Below are positions 35,083 through 43,600 of a DNA stretch of 64,000 nt, one piece after another. Origin of the DNA: Trichosphaerium sp. ATCC 40318 (Eukaryota; Protista; Tubulinea); the NCBI GenBank assembly GCA_038496445.1, contig JALMLS010000299.1, positions 124,001-188,000 of the forward strand, written 5' to 3'. Position numbers and translations under genes: made by a program. Each line of letters begins with the position of its first letter. The first letter of the stretch is position 1. The notes under the pieces are model-generated. The model had not been told where the DNA came from. It worked only from the letters and a program-made list of their open reading frames with translations, and searched no databases.

Positions 35083-36920
35083 TCAACTTACAGTCTCATC
35101 AGTACATGCACCTATCAATACAAAATTCCTTGGTGAAAGCTTTGGATCAAACATTGGAACAATCTTACACTCTACACCATGTTCCTTAAAGTACAGCAAT
35201 CTATCCACCATAATCAAAGTTTCAATTACAGGAGCAAGGGCTGCACGCAAACTCCAATAAGCAATGACTGTCTTTTCCCTATTGAAGAAACATAAGCACA
35301 GGTTTAGAAGGCTCTTCTTAAGTACGTACAATACTGCAAAAGGCTCGTATTCAGAAAGCACTTGTGCTTCATCACTCGGCAGGCCACATTCGGTTGTACG
35401 ACTTTTAGCAAGATTATAGTATGATAAAAATGATTCAGTGTCAAATTTTCTTATGAATCCAACTACCACTGAAGGTAAGATATCTGCAGGAGCATATTTG
35501 CGAATCATGTGTTGCAATATACATCGGAAAAAATGCTTCCTGAATAAACGTTTGCTATGGCTTCCTGCAAATGTGGGTACAGATTGACAACCTGGAATCT
35601 ATATTAGTACAAAAAAACAGTTTTTGACAAGCTAAGTTGTTTCATACCAAGCATTAAAGAGTCTCGGTTCAGTTTGCTCGGATCAAGAGCATTGACGAAC
35701 TTGCTAATGGGATAGCCAAAATTTCCTTCCGGTGAAGTAATCTTGTGGTAGCAACAAGCTACATCAACAAATGCCTTGAATTTATGTCTTAAAAAAATGT
35801 CCATCATGGACGTTGCCAAATCACCACAAGTATGTAATCCTTGGTAAAGAGTTAGCCACTTACAGCAAGTACGTGTGCATACCGAGGAGAATGCTAGATT
35901 CAGGTTTAGCAACAAACTCGGTGGAAGGTTCTTCGCCCTCCGTTTGCTTATTTACAACTTTATACAGGTCCTCATGGCTCATCTGTGGTGTTATAACATC
36001 CGTTATGATTTTAATTTTACCCATGTTTGGGTTCTTTAGGTTTTTGGCAGCTGTAAGATTGTTAAAAATCATTGACTCTTTTATATCTACGTACTAAGCC
36101 AAGCGTCTATATTGCGCATACGTTTAGATGCGCCATTACTATGTATTATGTTTGCATCAATTGAGATAACATTAAGGTTGTGGTGGTATGCGAGCACCTG
36201 AGATAAATAGCCCTTTTGTTGATTTAGCGTCGAGACTTACAGTTTTTTATGTTTGTCCGTACCTTGCCCGATCCTACATCTACTACACTATCGAGACCAT
36301 ACTCTTTAGCGAGTGCCGCAATCGAGTGGGACAAATAGAGCACTTCATGTTTCTTTTTAGGATTCATGCCTCTCATTATACTCTGGTCTATCTTTATCGC
36401 CTTGTAATCACCTGGAATCACTTGTTCGTTATCAAACGCAAGACGACGAGAAGTTCTTGCGCTTTGTTAGATTGGGTGGGAATAAATTGTGTACAAAATG
36501 AAGGATTTCAGAGATTCTGGCCATTCGGTACAATATTTCCCTGTTTGACGCTTAGGATTCGGTTGTGTTGAACTTTGCTTGTACCTGAAGGTATGGCAAC
36601 AAGAGATTCGAATGAAGAGTTTCTGAAATTTAAATAAGATTAGATACAACACGTTGTAACGTGCGTCAGCGGAGATTGCCATTCTTGCGGAATGTCTGCC
36701 CATTGTCCTAACGCAAATAAATTTATTCCCTAGCCTTAATGTAAGCTATGGTAGCCTACATCGCTAACCTTCTTTCTGTGCAAGCTTCCCACGCTATTCA
36801 AGTGTGCCTAGAGTTTATTCAGTTGTAGTTGGTGTATTGTTGAATAATTCGCACTATTATCTCCTCGGCGCGTTGTTTGAGCGCACTAACACAAAGCGGG
36901 TCTTCAGCACGTTCTGCCAT
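35083..36920 (-). CDS. METTL25/RRNAD1-family methyltransferase
   Basis: GMNPKKKHEV, VVDVGSGK, GLHTCGDL, VACCYHKIT, LAPVIETLIMVDRLLY, MFDPKLSPRN. Confidence 0.88.
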
Positions 36921-37186
36921 CGCAAATACTTGGTGTTTTATTGTTAAACCTACTTGAGCTGCCTTGGTGGTGAATTGGGATGGTAGAGTGACTTGTCATG
37001 GCACCAATTTTATTACTGTATTTGACTGCAATTACAACCATTTTTATTTGTAATCTGGCGTAAGGATACCAACTCAAGCAGTGGTGAAACAACGTCATTA
37101 ATAACCGCGCAATAATATTTGAAAAGTGTACAAATCGCGAAAGCGTACCTCAACCTTGATCAGGTGTAAAACTGCACGTTTACAAA

Positions 37187-39189
37187 ATGCAGATGGTTGT
37201 AGAAGGTAAAATAAATTGGTTATTGCTTTCCTGACAATAGTAGGTTTGGGCTATGCATTCACCGCAGTACACGGACTAATGCAAGCGAATAAGGTAACAG
37301 CTTTTTTGTACAATTAAAACTAACCAACCAAGGACTTCGTTAATGAAGTAGATGGGTTAACAGACACTATTGGCATGGTCGAAGCAGCAACGGCACCTGT
37401 TTTATTACAATACGAGGCAAGCTTTTTGTATACGCGTGTATTTAGCTCTAACCGCGTTTAGAATGATAAGGAAAGCCTCGGTGATGACATGCAAACCGTT
37501 GTAGAATTAATTGATAAAACTGTAAAAGATGCTAAAGATACCCTTGAACGCGTACAAGAAAGCAGGTACATAACATGGAATGTTATTCTCCTATTAACGC
37601 CACTAGAAAAAATGCAACACTCATTTTTGGTGTCAACTTGTGGCGCCCTCAAAAAGACATTGACGAGCTTAAAAGTCATCAAGACAAGTTAAACAAGCTT
37701 ACACAAGTACTTTCTATAGCTATATCGTCTCGTAAAGGCAACCCAACCGCTCAAAGGTACAAGACAACGTTCGTTTTGAATTTTTGACATAACTGTTAAA
37801 GGGGTTGCGTTGAATTGAGGGAACAGTTACTGAAACAGAAGTCACTAGCTTTTTGGGCAAAACACTTTGCAGATAGCTACGTCAAAGTATCATGGGGATC
37901 ATTTGGTGCTGCCCTAATGCATGAATACTTGCCTGAGTATGACAATGATCTGAAAAAGTACAGACAAATGGTGTGCGCTTTTTATTCCAGTACCAACCTT
38001 CTCTTTGACTCATTCGACCTTTTTCTTTAGCAACACGCCTTGAAACAAGTACTCGATCGCAGTAGGCACGTGTAAAACCCAAGACCATTTGTTTTTCTTA
38101 TGATTAACATAAAGTTTATAGGGATAACGTAGTTACAATATATGATCTAGCTTCGTTTACAAAAGACCTTGATTTAGACGAAGCAGTAAAACAGTTCGAA
38201 GAACGCTTCAAAAAAGAACTTGAATCCACAAAATCATCCTCATCCCGTAAGAGAACTCTGGCACAATCAGATGACATGCCAACTACAAAGTACGCCTCGT
38301 AAAAAATAAAAGAAGAGAAAATAGAGCTTTGATAAGCATCATCAAGTACAACTACTTACCCCTTTGTTAGACGAAGAAAAATGATGCCTCCACCTATTCC
38401 AACACGGAGTAAATACCATTTAGAAATATTCGGAAGTACTCCAGTTATAAAGCATACCACAAACAGCAAGGTTGCTCGCATTGGTATCAATTGGCTTAAA
38501 CCACATGCAATTGGAAGACAAGATTTTGTTGGTATTCTTCCACCAGAGCTCTTGGCGCGTATTAGTCGCGTTCATTTTGTTATTGGAGCACAGGTCGATA
38601 ATCAAGGAAAGCCCTCTAGTTTTTACGTTACAGATAAGAGGTACAAAGTCCGGGTATTTATTGGGAAGAATTAACTTTTTTTCGTACAGTGGGAATGGAA
38701 CTTTTTTGAATGGTACCCTGTTGGGACGAGGTAATACGAGCCAATTGGCAGCTCTTGATAAGATTGTCATGCTTCGCAATAAAAGAACACATAAACCAGA
38801 ACTTGGGTACAGTTAAAGCTACACGACAAGAAATTGACTCAAAATGTTGTTCTAGATATACATTCACTATCAAAGTGAAGAAGCAATTATCCAGATCAAT
38901 GTCATCACCTTCTGTTGGCATATCAAAGATGTCCATAACGTCAGATACAAAAATACAGCCAAACAATCCGCGACCATCCTGTAAATACGGCAGAAATTGC
39001 TACAGAAAAAATGAAAAGCATAGAACAGACTTCTATCATGAAGGGGAAGATGATCCTTTGACTGATGATACTGCATCTGAAGGAAAATCGCCTTCAATTA
39101 GTGTTCCTGATACCAAAACAACTGATAAAGTACCAGACATTGTAATAGTAGAAGCGTCAGGAAGTGATAGTGTAAATAAAGAAAAATAG
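37187..39189 (+). CDS. Multidomain protein: N-terminal helical bundle, Cbl-type EF-hand-like domain, FHA, PBZ zinc finger
   Basis: FWAKHF..VSWGSF..LKQVLDRS|RDNVVTIYDLASFTK; FHA AIGR..ISRVHF..DK|SGNGTFLNG; PBZ RPSCKYGRNCYRKNEKHRTDFYH. Confidence 0.8.
37417..37461 (+). other. GC-AG intron
   Basis: TACGAG|GCAAGC...CTAACCGCGTTTAG|AATGAT; nearby GT donors give the wrong phase. Confidence 0.7.
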
Positions 39190-40608: not shown

Positions 40609-43600
40609 TCAAGGTCTTTGGATTGTTAGGGAGAACAGTTGACCCACTGTATTTGCAGCAATGATATGCTTCTTTCCAGAGACAGTGGCACTGGCTACGC
40701 TCGTGAGAGGAGCGGAGGTAACGAATTCGCCAGTGGATTTGCGCGTTCTAGTGTTCCAAGCGCGAAGTGTTGTACCACCAACAGATAGGAGCTCTGTGTT
40801 GACAGCAGGCATAAATGTGATGCCAGATAAGCGACCTTGGCCAAGCAACGTGATTGAGCTGTTGTTTGGTGAATTAACGGAACTCACACGAATAGATCCG
40901 TCTTCGGAGCACGAGGCGAGAGAGTTGCTATCAGGACTGAAGGCGAGATCGGTGACACAATTCGTGTGAGCAGGGATTTGAAAGGCAAGAACACCGTTTG
41001 ATGGATTCCATAATCTGACTGTATCATCGTATGAGGCCGAAGCGCAGAAGCGGCCATTAGGAGAGAAGCATACCTGAAAAAGAAATTAATTTATGAAAAA
41101 CTTGAAAAGAAGATATTATACACTTACCTTAGTGATCCAGTCAGTGTGTCCAGTCATAACCCTTTGTTTGGATCGCGAACCAACACTCCAAACAATGACC
41201 TGGTTGTCCCAACCACCTGAAATGATCTTGGAGCCAGAGGAATCGAATCCACAACTCCACACAGGGGCATTATGACCTGTGAATGTGGCAACTGCTGTGT
41301 TACCTTGACGAATATCCCACAGTTTCAATAACTTGTTGTCAGCAGCTGTAACAATAAGAGAACCATTTGAAGAGAACTTGGCGTCACGGACTGGGATATT
41401 TTCTCCGTGAGTGAAGGTGCGCATTTTGAGGCCTGTCTCGAGGTTCCAGACGATTGCGGTTCCATCATCTGAGGCTGTGACTGCTTTGCCTGAAGAGGTG
41501 ATGTCTACGTTATTGACATAACCAGGGTGTCCTTCCAAGGTTTCAAGGACTACTTCTTCTTCTGGCTCGTCGACAGTAAGGGAAAAGCTGCTGGTAAAGC
41601 CATAACCGCCTACATCGTCATCGTCGTCCTTGTCATCACCAATACCGGCATTCCACATTTTCATTGTACCGTCCTTGCTCGCAGATACAATTTGCTTGGT
41701 GACTGGATCGAAATTTGCAGATAGGACAGAGTCTGCGTGACCAGTAAGAGTAGCAACCTCAGTAGCTGCCAAAGGATTCCAGATCTAAACAATGACGTTA
41801 ATACCAAACACTTCGCTGATGTATTATTATTACCTTTAATGTGTGGTCATCAGAAACGGAGGCAATACGTTTGCCATCTGGAGAGAATGCAACGCCGTTG
41901 ATGCGCATCTCGTGTCCTTTGAGAGTCGTAATTTCAGTGCAGGATTTAGCGTCCCAGATTTTAAGGGATCCATCATACGACGCAGATACAATATGTTCGC
42001 CGGTTGGAGAGAATCGGCAAAATACAACAGCGCTCTCGTGACCAGCCATAGTCGCGATTTCCTTGGTCTTGCGCATGTTCCACAATTTGAGGTTGTAATC
42101 CCATGAAGAGGATATGACGCGGTTGCTGTCGTTAGACATGTGACAGCAATTGATCCAGTCCATGTGAGCATTGATGACTTTTAGGCAATGTCCATTTCTA
42201 GCGTCCCATAGTCTTAACGTTTTATCTCTAGAAGCGGAGAGAATGTGCTTGCCTGTTAAAAGGGTAAGTAACTATTTTAGAAGGGGACAAGAAATAAACA
42301 AAAGAAGTATTATTCTTAGCGTACCGTTTGGTGCGAATGACACAGAGCGAACAACTGAGTCGTGACCAACAAGTTCTTCTTCGCATGCACTTTCACCAGT
42401 TGCAGCATTCCATACCCGAATGCTGAAGTCATCAGAGCCGGTGGCAAGGCGGTAGTCACCAGAGATTGGTGCCCATGAAAGTGAGTTTACAGCGCTGCGG
42501 TGACCCTTTAGTTCTCGCTCAACTGCACCGCTAGAAGCGTTCCAGATCACAACGAGTCCATCTTCAGAGCAAGATGCAACATAGCGGCCGTCGTACGAGA
42601 ATTCAGCGTAGGTAATTGGGCGATTGTGTGCTGTGGCAGACCAGAGTGGTTCTTCTGGTTTCTCCAAGTCCCACACAGATACAATGCAATCGGAGGATCC
42701 GGTAACAACGAGATTGCCTTGAGAAGGGTTGAAGCACACGCAGTTGAAGTAACCTTCCTTGATTTTTATGGTTTGGATCTCTTTACCCAAGTTAGCATTC
42801 CAGACTTTGAGGGTGCTGTCGTCTGATGCGGATACTACTTGCTGGCCATCTGCAGAGTATGTGACGCAGTTGATAGGCTTTGCGTGAGCGCTGAGCTTGC
42901 TGATAACTTTTCCGGCTGCGGCGTCCCAAAGGATCATTTTGTTGTCTAAGCCGCCAGATACGATGTGCTTTCCTGAAGGGGACATGGAAAGGGAACGGAT
43001 GGATCCTTCGTGACCAGAAAGGGTGCGCAATAAAGCACCGTCTTCAACATTGAAAATTGTGATATCTCCATCCCAGGAGGCTGCAATGACCTGTTTGTCA
43101 TCTGGGGAGAATGTACAACTGTTGAGAGGACGAGATTTTGGGAAATTGAACCATTTTCGTAAAGGTTTGCCTTCGATAGCATCCCAGTACTTAAGGTGGC
43201 AATCCCATGAAGCAGAAAGTAGGTATCTGCCATCGTTGGAATAAGCAACATCATTGACTCTCCTGTTGTGACCCTTGAGAGTAGTGATTTCGGCTTTGAC
43301 GTAGAGGTCCCAAAGCTTGATGGTCTTATCCCAAGATCCTGATACGAGTTGGCGACTGTCGTAAGAGAAAAGAAGAACTGGGATTGCGTTGGTGTGTCCA
43401 GTCAAAGTGCATATTTCGGCACCTAAATTGTACAAATAAGTATCTGGCAATAATATAGTAAAAAATTAAAGAGAAGCAAAACGTACCAGTGTGAGCATCG
43501 TAAATCTTGATGCTGCAATCCTTTAGAGCGCAAGCAATCATAGTTCCGTCAGGCGATACTGTAGTAGCGGTAACTGCGCCTTGGAAACCAGAGAATGTCA

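Follow-up and report, generated by a model that had tools for sequence, protein, structure and literature searches.

The stretch of DNA analysed here (the window) comprises 64,000 nucleotides of contig JALMLS010000299.1 from the amoebozoan Trichosphaerium sp. ATCC 40318 (GenBank assembly GCA_038496445.1, positions 124,001 to 188,000 of the forward strand). At 37187..39189 of the window there is a single gene on the forward (+) strand, on which all of the features described for it also lie, with a predicted protein of 499 amino acids (aa) that consists, from the N- to the C-terminus, of a helical region, an EF-hand-like segment resembling that of Cbl and STAT, a basic linker, an FHA domain, a PBZ zinc finger, and an acidic tail. 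A preliminary description of the locus had named a helical N-terminus, an FWxxHF..VSWxxF segment with a Cbl-like EF-hand, an FHA core, and a PBZ finger, and inspection of the sequence together with profile searches located each of these elements at its expected place. The neighbouring genes are both found on the (-) strand, i.e., an upstream gene (35607-35915 and ~35083-36700) with a Methyltransf_32 domain (E 1.4e-08), and a downstream gene (40612-41772) encoding multiple WD40 repeats of a propeller, with matches to TEP1-like propellers.

Gene structure and transcription

The surrounding region is eukaryotic, and stop codons interrupt the open frames every 20-270 nt. By frame tracking and splice-site analysis the gene was divided into 11 exons (37187-37205, 37244-37293, 37333-37416, 37462-37565, 37607-37756, 37802-37970, 38031-38065, 38122-38289, 38371-38640, 38690-38806, and 38856-39189) and 10 introns of 38-81 nt. 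The start codon is the ATG at 37187, upstream of which an in-frame TGA is found at 37157, and the stop codon is the TAG at 39187-39189. Eight introns are of the GT-AG class and two, introns 3 (37417..37461, 45 nt, donor GCAAGC) and 7 (38066..38121, 56 nt, donor GCACGT), are of the GC-AG class, the latter splitting the EF-hand loop described below. A TAAC-like motif, reminiscent of a branch point, is present close to the 5' side of the acceptor in several introns (37206-38855).

All of the exons are short and GC donors are needed for two introns, as might be expected if the gene model were an artefact in which two adjacent genes, or untranslated DNA, had been joined by eye. Against this, all ten junctions, the two GC-AG junctions included, are present in spliced contigs of the public runs X1, X2, and X3, which come from three studies. 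In X3 the junction of intron 3 was read as 37414>37460 with 2 ambiguous letters, and that of intron 7 as 38062>38119 with 4 ambiguous letters. An X3 contig of 1176 nt covers 37460-38988, running from exon 4 as far as the beginning of the PBZ finger in exon 11, and therefore the exons belong to one mRNA and not to two genes; among further contigs, some join the 5' untranslated region with exon 4 and others extend from exon 10 to where the coding region ends. The reading frame is uninterrupted over 499 codons in a scripted frame check. The gene is thus transcribed as one spliced mRNA, and an artefact of the gene model is hardly conceivable. The preliminary description had also assumed a single gene, to be abandoned if cDNA revealed two, and the spliced contigs contain one transcript; its span and its start at 37187 were retained, while the acceptor of intron 1 had to be moved by 3 nt. 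In the RNA contigs this acceptor is the AG at 37242-43, so that exon 2 begins at 37244, the coding sequence (CDS) is 1500 nt long, and the protein has 499 aa.

The sequences of X2 and X3 are identical to that of the window. X1 differs at 38438 (A>G, T283A) and 39107 (C>T, P473L), both of which change an amino acid in the linker or the tail. In the analyses that follow, database searches were carried out exon by exon, and the joined CDS was used for the frame check, the pattern scans, the hydrophobic moment, and two local hidden Markov models (HMMs).

PBZ finger and acidic tail

Exon 11 encodes a zinc finger of the form C-x5-C-x6-H-x5-H (aa 431-450, 38971..39039, sequence CKYGRNCYRKNEKHRTDFYH), in which Arg and Tyr residues flank the first Cys pair. 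It was matched by the Pfam family zf-CCHH (PF10283) with 43 bits (E 4.2e-11, gathering cut-off 22.7), and in a six-frame scan of the genome it scored 46.1 bits at the same coordinates, 38971-39039, at which a textbook PBZ finger had been recognised beforehand. It also matches both PBZ1 and PBZ2 of human APLF (E 3.8e-10) with the same spacing of the zinc ligands, and in this alignment the flanking Arg, Tyr, and Tyr-Arg positions are identical. Judged by its sequence, the assignment of this finger to the PBZ family is certain.

The protein ends with an acidic, Ser/Thr-rich tail (aa 451-499, 39040..39186) containing 13 acidic and 5 basic residues. As read from the translation, the stretch at 39139-39171 contains IVIV and then E-A-S-G-S-D-S, which resembles a SUMO-interaction motif and might function as one.

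FHA domain

The FHA domain (approximately aa 275-396, 38414..38877) is distributed over exons 9 to 11 and contains the motifs G308-R309, S325-x-x-H328 (SRVH), and N352-G-T. The Pfam FHA model (PF00498) matched exon 9 with 13.2 bits over profile positions 3-37 and exon 10 with 14.7 bits over positions 42-65; the two matches are adjacent and colinear, and sum to 27.9 bits compared with a gathering score of 20.7. Each exon alone falls below this cut-off because the domain is split by intron 9. A second comparison was made by hhalign with P0003, a bacterial 4xFHA protein (Pfam FHA 5.5e-49) whose four domains had been aligned with one another; it yielded colinear matches with probabilities of 96% for exon 9 (GR...SRxH) and 74% for exon 10 (NGTxLNG...GDKI), G308-R309, S325/H328, and N352-G-T falling on invariant columns of the bacterial protein. 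Since P0003 had come from the search with exon 9, the exon 10 match alone is independent. The FHA core proposed at the outset from the GR, SRxH, and NGT motifs is borne out by these part-matches, and we take the intron-split FHA domain to be real, as far as profiles can tell.

The four weak matches to exon 9 among 1.84 billion representative proteins included no orthologue. Three of them have only scattered, unrelated Pfam matches, none of these to FHA, and are probably artefacts of repeats or low complexity; the fourth is the bacterial 4xFHA protein, which is not an orthologue. No relative of exon 9 was detected in JGI metagenome contigs, and exons 5, 6, and 9 found only themselves, and no paralogue, in the 70-Mb genome of the organism. 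When phmmer was run against the PDB, exon 9 returned only cutinases, which were set aside as chance matches, and exon 10 returned 0 matches; exons 6, 9, and 10 together yielded no FHA or Cbl chain.

N-terminal helical region

The first 135 aa, encoded by exons 1-5 (37187..37756), look helical, with approximately four predicted amphipathic helices separated, by eye, by Gly and Pro residues. The mean helical hydrophobic moment of this region exceeds that of shuffled sequences with z 2.7 (compared with z -0.6 for the FHA region). The amphipathic helical N-terminus of the preliminary description is thus matched by a measurable excess of amphipathicity, and a bundle formed by these helices is a prediction. 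Pfam searches with the N-terminal exons matched no family, and the Cbl_N model (PF02262) was silent on exons 3, 4, and 5 at E values up to 10. The same model was silent on helical exons located upstream in two loci of this genome, L001 and L003, that encode EF-hand and SH2 domains, and its silence on the present gene therefore says little. A genome scan with Cbl_N gave a single 18-bit match elsewhere, which was discarded because it lies in a non-coding-looking stretch. No paralogue of exon 5 was found in the genome. The last N-terminal helix is similar to helix D of the Cbl four-helix (4H) domain, also in its distance from the FW motif, a likeness that we treat as a lead.

EF-hand-like segment

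The helices are followed by a segment of the form FWxxHF..VSWxxF..LDxxxDxxVTIYDL (aa 153-213) within an EF-hand-like region of Cbl/STAT type (approximately aa 144-220, exons 6-8, 37824..38170). Exon 6 was matched by a sole Pfam family, Cbl_N2 (PF02761), with 15.4 bits and E 0.029 over positions 2-33 of the 84-position profile, below the cut-off of 22 bits; the rest of the domain would be spread over exons 7 and 8. A local HMM for the first half of the domain, built from four of the EF-hand and SH2 loci of the same genome with the present gene left out, put exon 6 at the top of 1998 pieces from the six reading frames of the window (E 0.0038, compared with 0.23 for the runner-up), and its score was reached by 0 of 2000 shuffles. 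The candidate loop, DRSRDNVVTIYDL (aa 201-213, 38055..38149, split by intron 7), fits a PROSITE-type EF-hand pattern (PS00018), which had any match in just 65 of 20000 composition-matched shuffles. A profile of the second half scored -0.5 bits on the joined sequence (p ~0.02), with its best placement at the DRSRDNVVTIYDL loop, and no match on exon 8 alone.

The loci used for comparison deserve a short account. Eight Cbl_N2 matches (L001-L008, on contigs C401, C447, C88, C50, C2, C45, C32, and C5, respectively, of assembly G000) were found in the genome, five of them above the cut-off, one of these with in-frame neighbours only; L004 reached 33.5 bits as a stop-free piece. In at least five loci an SH2 domain directly follows the Cbl_N2-type EF-hand, as detected by Pfam in L005, L007, and L008 and by eye, as SH2-like motifs that are often in tandem, in L001, L003, and L004. 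In this family, which numbers at least six loci, the SH2 domains, one or two per locus, are of the GTFL[IV]RFS type, and several loci have a long helical exon upstream.

Two readings of the front of the protein were weighed against these data. According to the first, residues 1-220 form a helical region specific to the lineage and unrelated to Cbl and STAT, attached to the same nuclear FHA-PBZ adaptor, and the likeness to Cbl_N2 is that of a generic EF-hand or is due to chance. The Cbl_N2 score of 15.4 against 22 bits, confined to profile positions 2-33, is what such a region might give, as are the silence of Cbl_N, the weak second-half profile, the absence from this gene of the GFGP motif of the genome's EF-hand and SH2 genes, and the lack of any significant match when all exons were compared by tblastn with the Cbl_N2 loci of the genome. 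An intron right after FW..FG, which L001, L003, L004, and L008 appear by eye to share, is likewise missing here, and its absence argues against a recent derivation from those loci. However, two independent profiles choose the same 30 residues, and a Ca2+-loop pattern comes next at about the expected spacing. On this evidence we regard an unrelated front region as rather doubtful. The second reading, in which the front half truly descends from a four-helix and EF-hand module of Cbl/STAT type that lost its SH2 domain and became joined to readers of phospho-threonine and poly(ADP-ribose) (PAR), is put forward tentatively, as a possibility somewhat against expectation. Taken by itself, a true EF-hand of Cbl/STAT type in this gene is fairly probable. 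The motif pointed out in the preliminary description is present, and the Cbl-type assignment is moderately supported by the Cbl_N2 match below the cut-off, the first rank in the local HMM, and the loop pattern. A phmmer search with exon 6 against the PDB gave 0 matches, hence no Cbl chain, and the features that exon 6 returned in the ESM Atlas, retrotransposon-gag fragments, were dismissed, since a helical piece of 56 aa is not expected to be informative in such a comparison.

Linker and putative nuclear localization motif

The EF-hand-like segment and the FHA domain are separated by a spacer of about 60 disordered, low-complexity residues with a high content of Ser, Lys/Arg, and Pro. Within this Ser-rich basic linker a bipartite motif resembling a nuclear localization signal (NLS), consisting of KR, 11 residues, and KRRK, was read from the translation (aa 247-263, 38246..38380, split by intron 8), and we infer from it that the protein would be imported into the nucleus. 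With a disordered spacer of this length, the FHA domain should be tethered rather than packed on the front module in the way that SH2 is in the TKB module of Cbl (4H, EF-hand, and SH2), and a compact TKB is therefore not expected.

The helical N-terminus had also prompted the idea of an executioner triggered by PAR or phosphorylation, in which a four-helix bundle like those of MLKL, HeLo, and RPW8 would permeabilise membranes on engagement of the readers. The location of a helical region of ~135 aa at the N-terminus, its amphipathicity (z 2.7), and a first helix rich in small residues (G-L-G-Y-A-F-T-A-V-H-G) would suit such an effector, but no exon had a Pfam match to MLKL/HeLo/RPW8-type families, the bipartite NLS-like motif and the chromatin-type, damage-associated readers point to the nucleus, and the helices lead directly into the EF-hand-like segment, as they do in Cbl. 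We know of no pairing of such an executioner bundle with these domains. Nothing was found in favour of this proposal, which we consider very improbable.

Comparison with known FHA, PBZ, and TKB proteins

Four known systems share parts of this architecture. APLF (aprataxin and PNK-like factor) of vertebrates is, as predicted for the present protein, an adaptor without an enzymatic domain; in both, FHA, PBZ, and an acidic tail follow in this order, and the PBZ finger described here shows 40-50% identity with those of APLF (PBZ1 and PBZ2), the Cys/His spacing and the Arg/Tyr positions being the same. The FHA domain of APLF is of the PNKP/aprataxin subtype, which is without the NGT motif. APLF has an N-terminal FHA, two PBZ fingers, and a Ku-binding motif, whereas the present protein has an internal FHA of the NGT type, one PBZ finger, and approximately 235 additional N-terminal residues, and has no sequence match to APLF beyond the PBZ finger. 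Membership in APLF was therefore rejected on the grounds of the internal, NGT-type FHA and the single PBZ.

CHFR resembles the protein in having a canonical NGT-type FHA domain plus a C-terminal PBZ finger. It differs in being an E3 ligase with a RING domain between the two, while here FHA and PBZ are approximately 35 residues apart and no exon has a Pfam match to RING; identity as CHFR was rejected for these two reasons.

In the Cbl TKB and in the EF-hand and SH2 genes of the same genome, the likeness lies at the other end of the protein, in the approximately four predicted helices, the FW..F/V.W..F...L segment, and the Ca2+-type loop. The present gene differs from them in that it is without SH2, RING, and GFGP, and the next domain is FHA; Pfam found neither SH2 (PF00017) nor Cbl_N3 on any exon, and identity as a Cbl TKB was rejected because no SH2 follows the EF-hand. 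With FHA some 60 disordered residues away, a composite binding site like that of the TKB is unlikely. The preliminary description had envisaged a Cbl-TKB-like module with exchanged readers. One transcript with FHA, PBZ, a Cbl_N2-type EF-hand-like segment, and no SH2 is consistent with that idea; the part that did not stand is the position of FHA, which is not in the place of SH2 in a compact TKB.

APL of Dictyostelium, an FHA and PBZ adaptor without a catalytic motif, reaches damaged chromatin via ADP-ribose (PMC5087659). The named PBZ proteins of Dictyostelium all fall within DNA repair or the damage response (PMC5087659, PMC8529158), and in amoebae the PBZ finger has proved valuable for tracking down further pathways that depend on PARP (PMC8529158). 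The present protein, a probable adaptor, has in common with APL its amoebozoan origin, FHA and PBZ, and the lack of a catalytic motif, and it is predicted to work most like proteins of this class. APL has an N-terminal FHA and is recruited by a C-terminal, circularly permuted macrodomain, whereas the present protein has a helical/EF-hand N-terminal part and no macrodomain, none being matched by Pfam on any exon and the protein ending 49 residues past the PBZ finger; the exon 9 search gave no APL-like relative. Identity as APL was rejected because the macrodomain is absent.

Predicted function

The presence of FHA and PBZ on one protein makes it probable that this is an adaptor in DNA-damage or ADP-ribose signalling, and the protein has no catalytic domain. 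On balance we lean towards a nuclear adaptor of the APLF/APL/CHFR kind, predicted to bind both PAR and phospho-threonine, with a helical/EF-hand front module of Cbl/STAT type. The bipartite NLS would bring the protein into the nucleus, where the PBZ finger would bind PAR made at DNA lesions and the FHA domain would bind a phospho-threonine of a partner protein; the protein may accumulate, or bridge its partners, at sites that bear the two marks together and nowhere else, as in APLF, CHFR, and Dictyostelium APL. The front part would most likely be related to the helical/EF-hand module found ahead of SH2 in Cbl, in STAT, and in the EF-hand and SH2 genes of this genome, with the SH2 itself absent. 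Its Ca2+ loop looks intact, and it might provide a third surface for interactions or a regulatory surface, possibly a Ca2+-sensitive one.

FHA and PBZ adaptors such as APLF, CHFR, and APL carry repair factors to ADP-ribosylated lesions, and an arrangement of FHA and PBZ behind a Cbl/STAT-type EF-hand module was found described nowhere; in the other copies seen in this genome, a module of this type accompanies an SH2 domain. If the proposed descent of the front half is true, the gene would be a natural swap of reader domains on a TKB scaffold, and its product a damage sensor with three inputs, sensitive to Ca2+ and restricted to a single amoebozoan lineage. Confirmation of the front module by fold would bear on how an ancient phosphotyrosine unit of helices, EF-hand, and SH2 could be dismantled and reused, and would hint that Ca2+ and PAR signalling might be connected; should the fold not confirm it, the protein would be one more lineage-specific DNA-damage adaptor.

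Other PBZ loci and possible duplicate loci

In the six-frame genome scan at least six PBZ loci, counting this gene, were detected. Other fingers of this family in assembly G000 are located at C30:18351-18428, C4:126473-126547, C91:10628-10705, and C62:90328-90372, and these loci may mark more damage-response genes. The PBZ matches on C30 and C371, as well as the Cbl_N2 loci L001 (C401) and L002 (C447), have identical scores and near-identical sequence, although the members of each pair are on different contigs, which suggests that the assembly contains uncollapsed haplotigs or recent duplicates.
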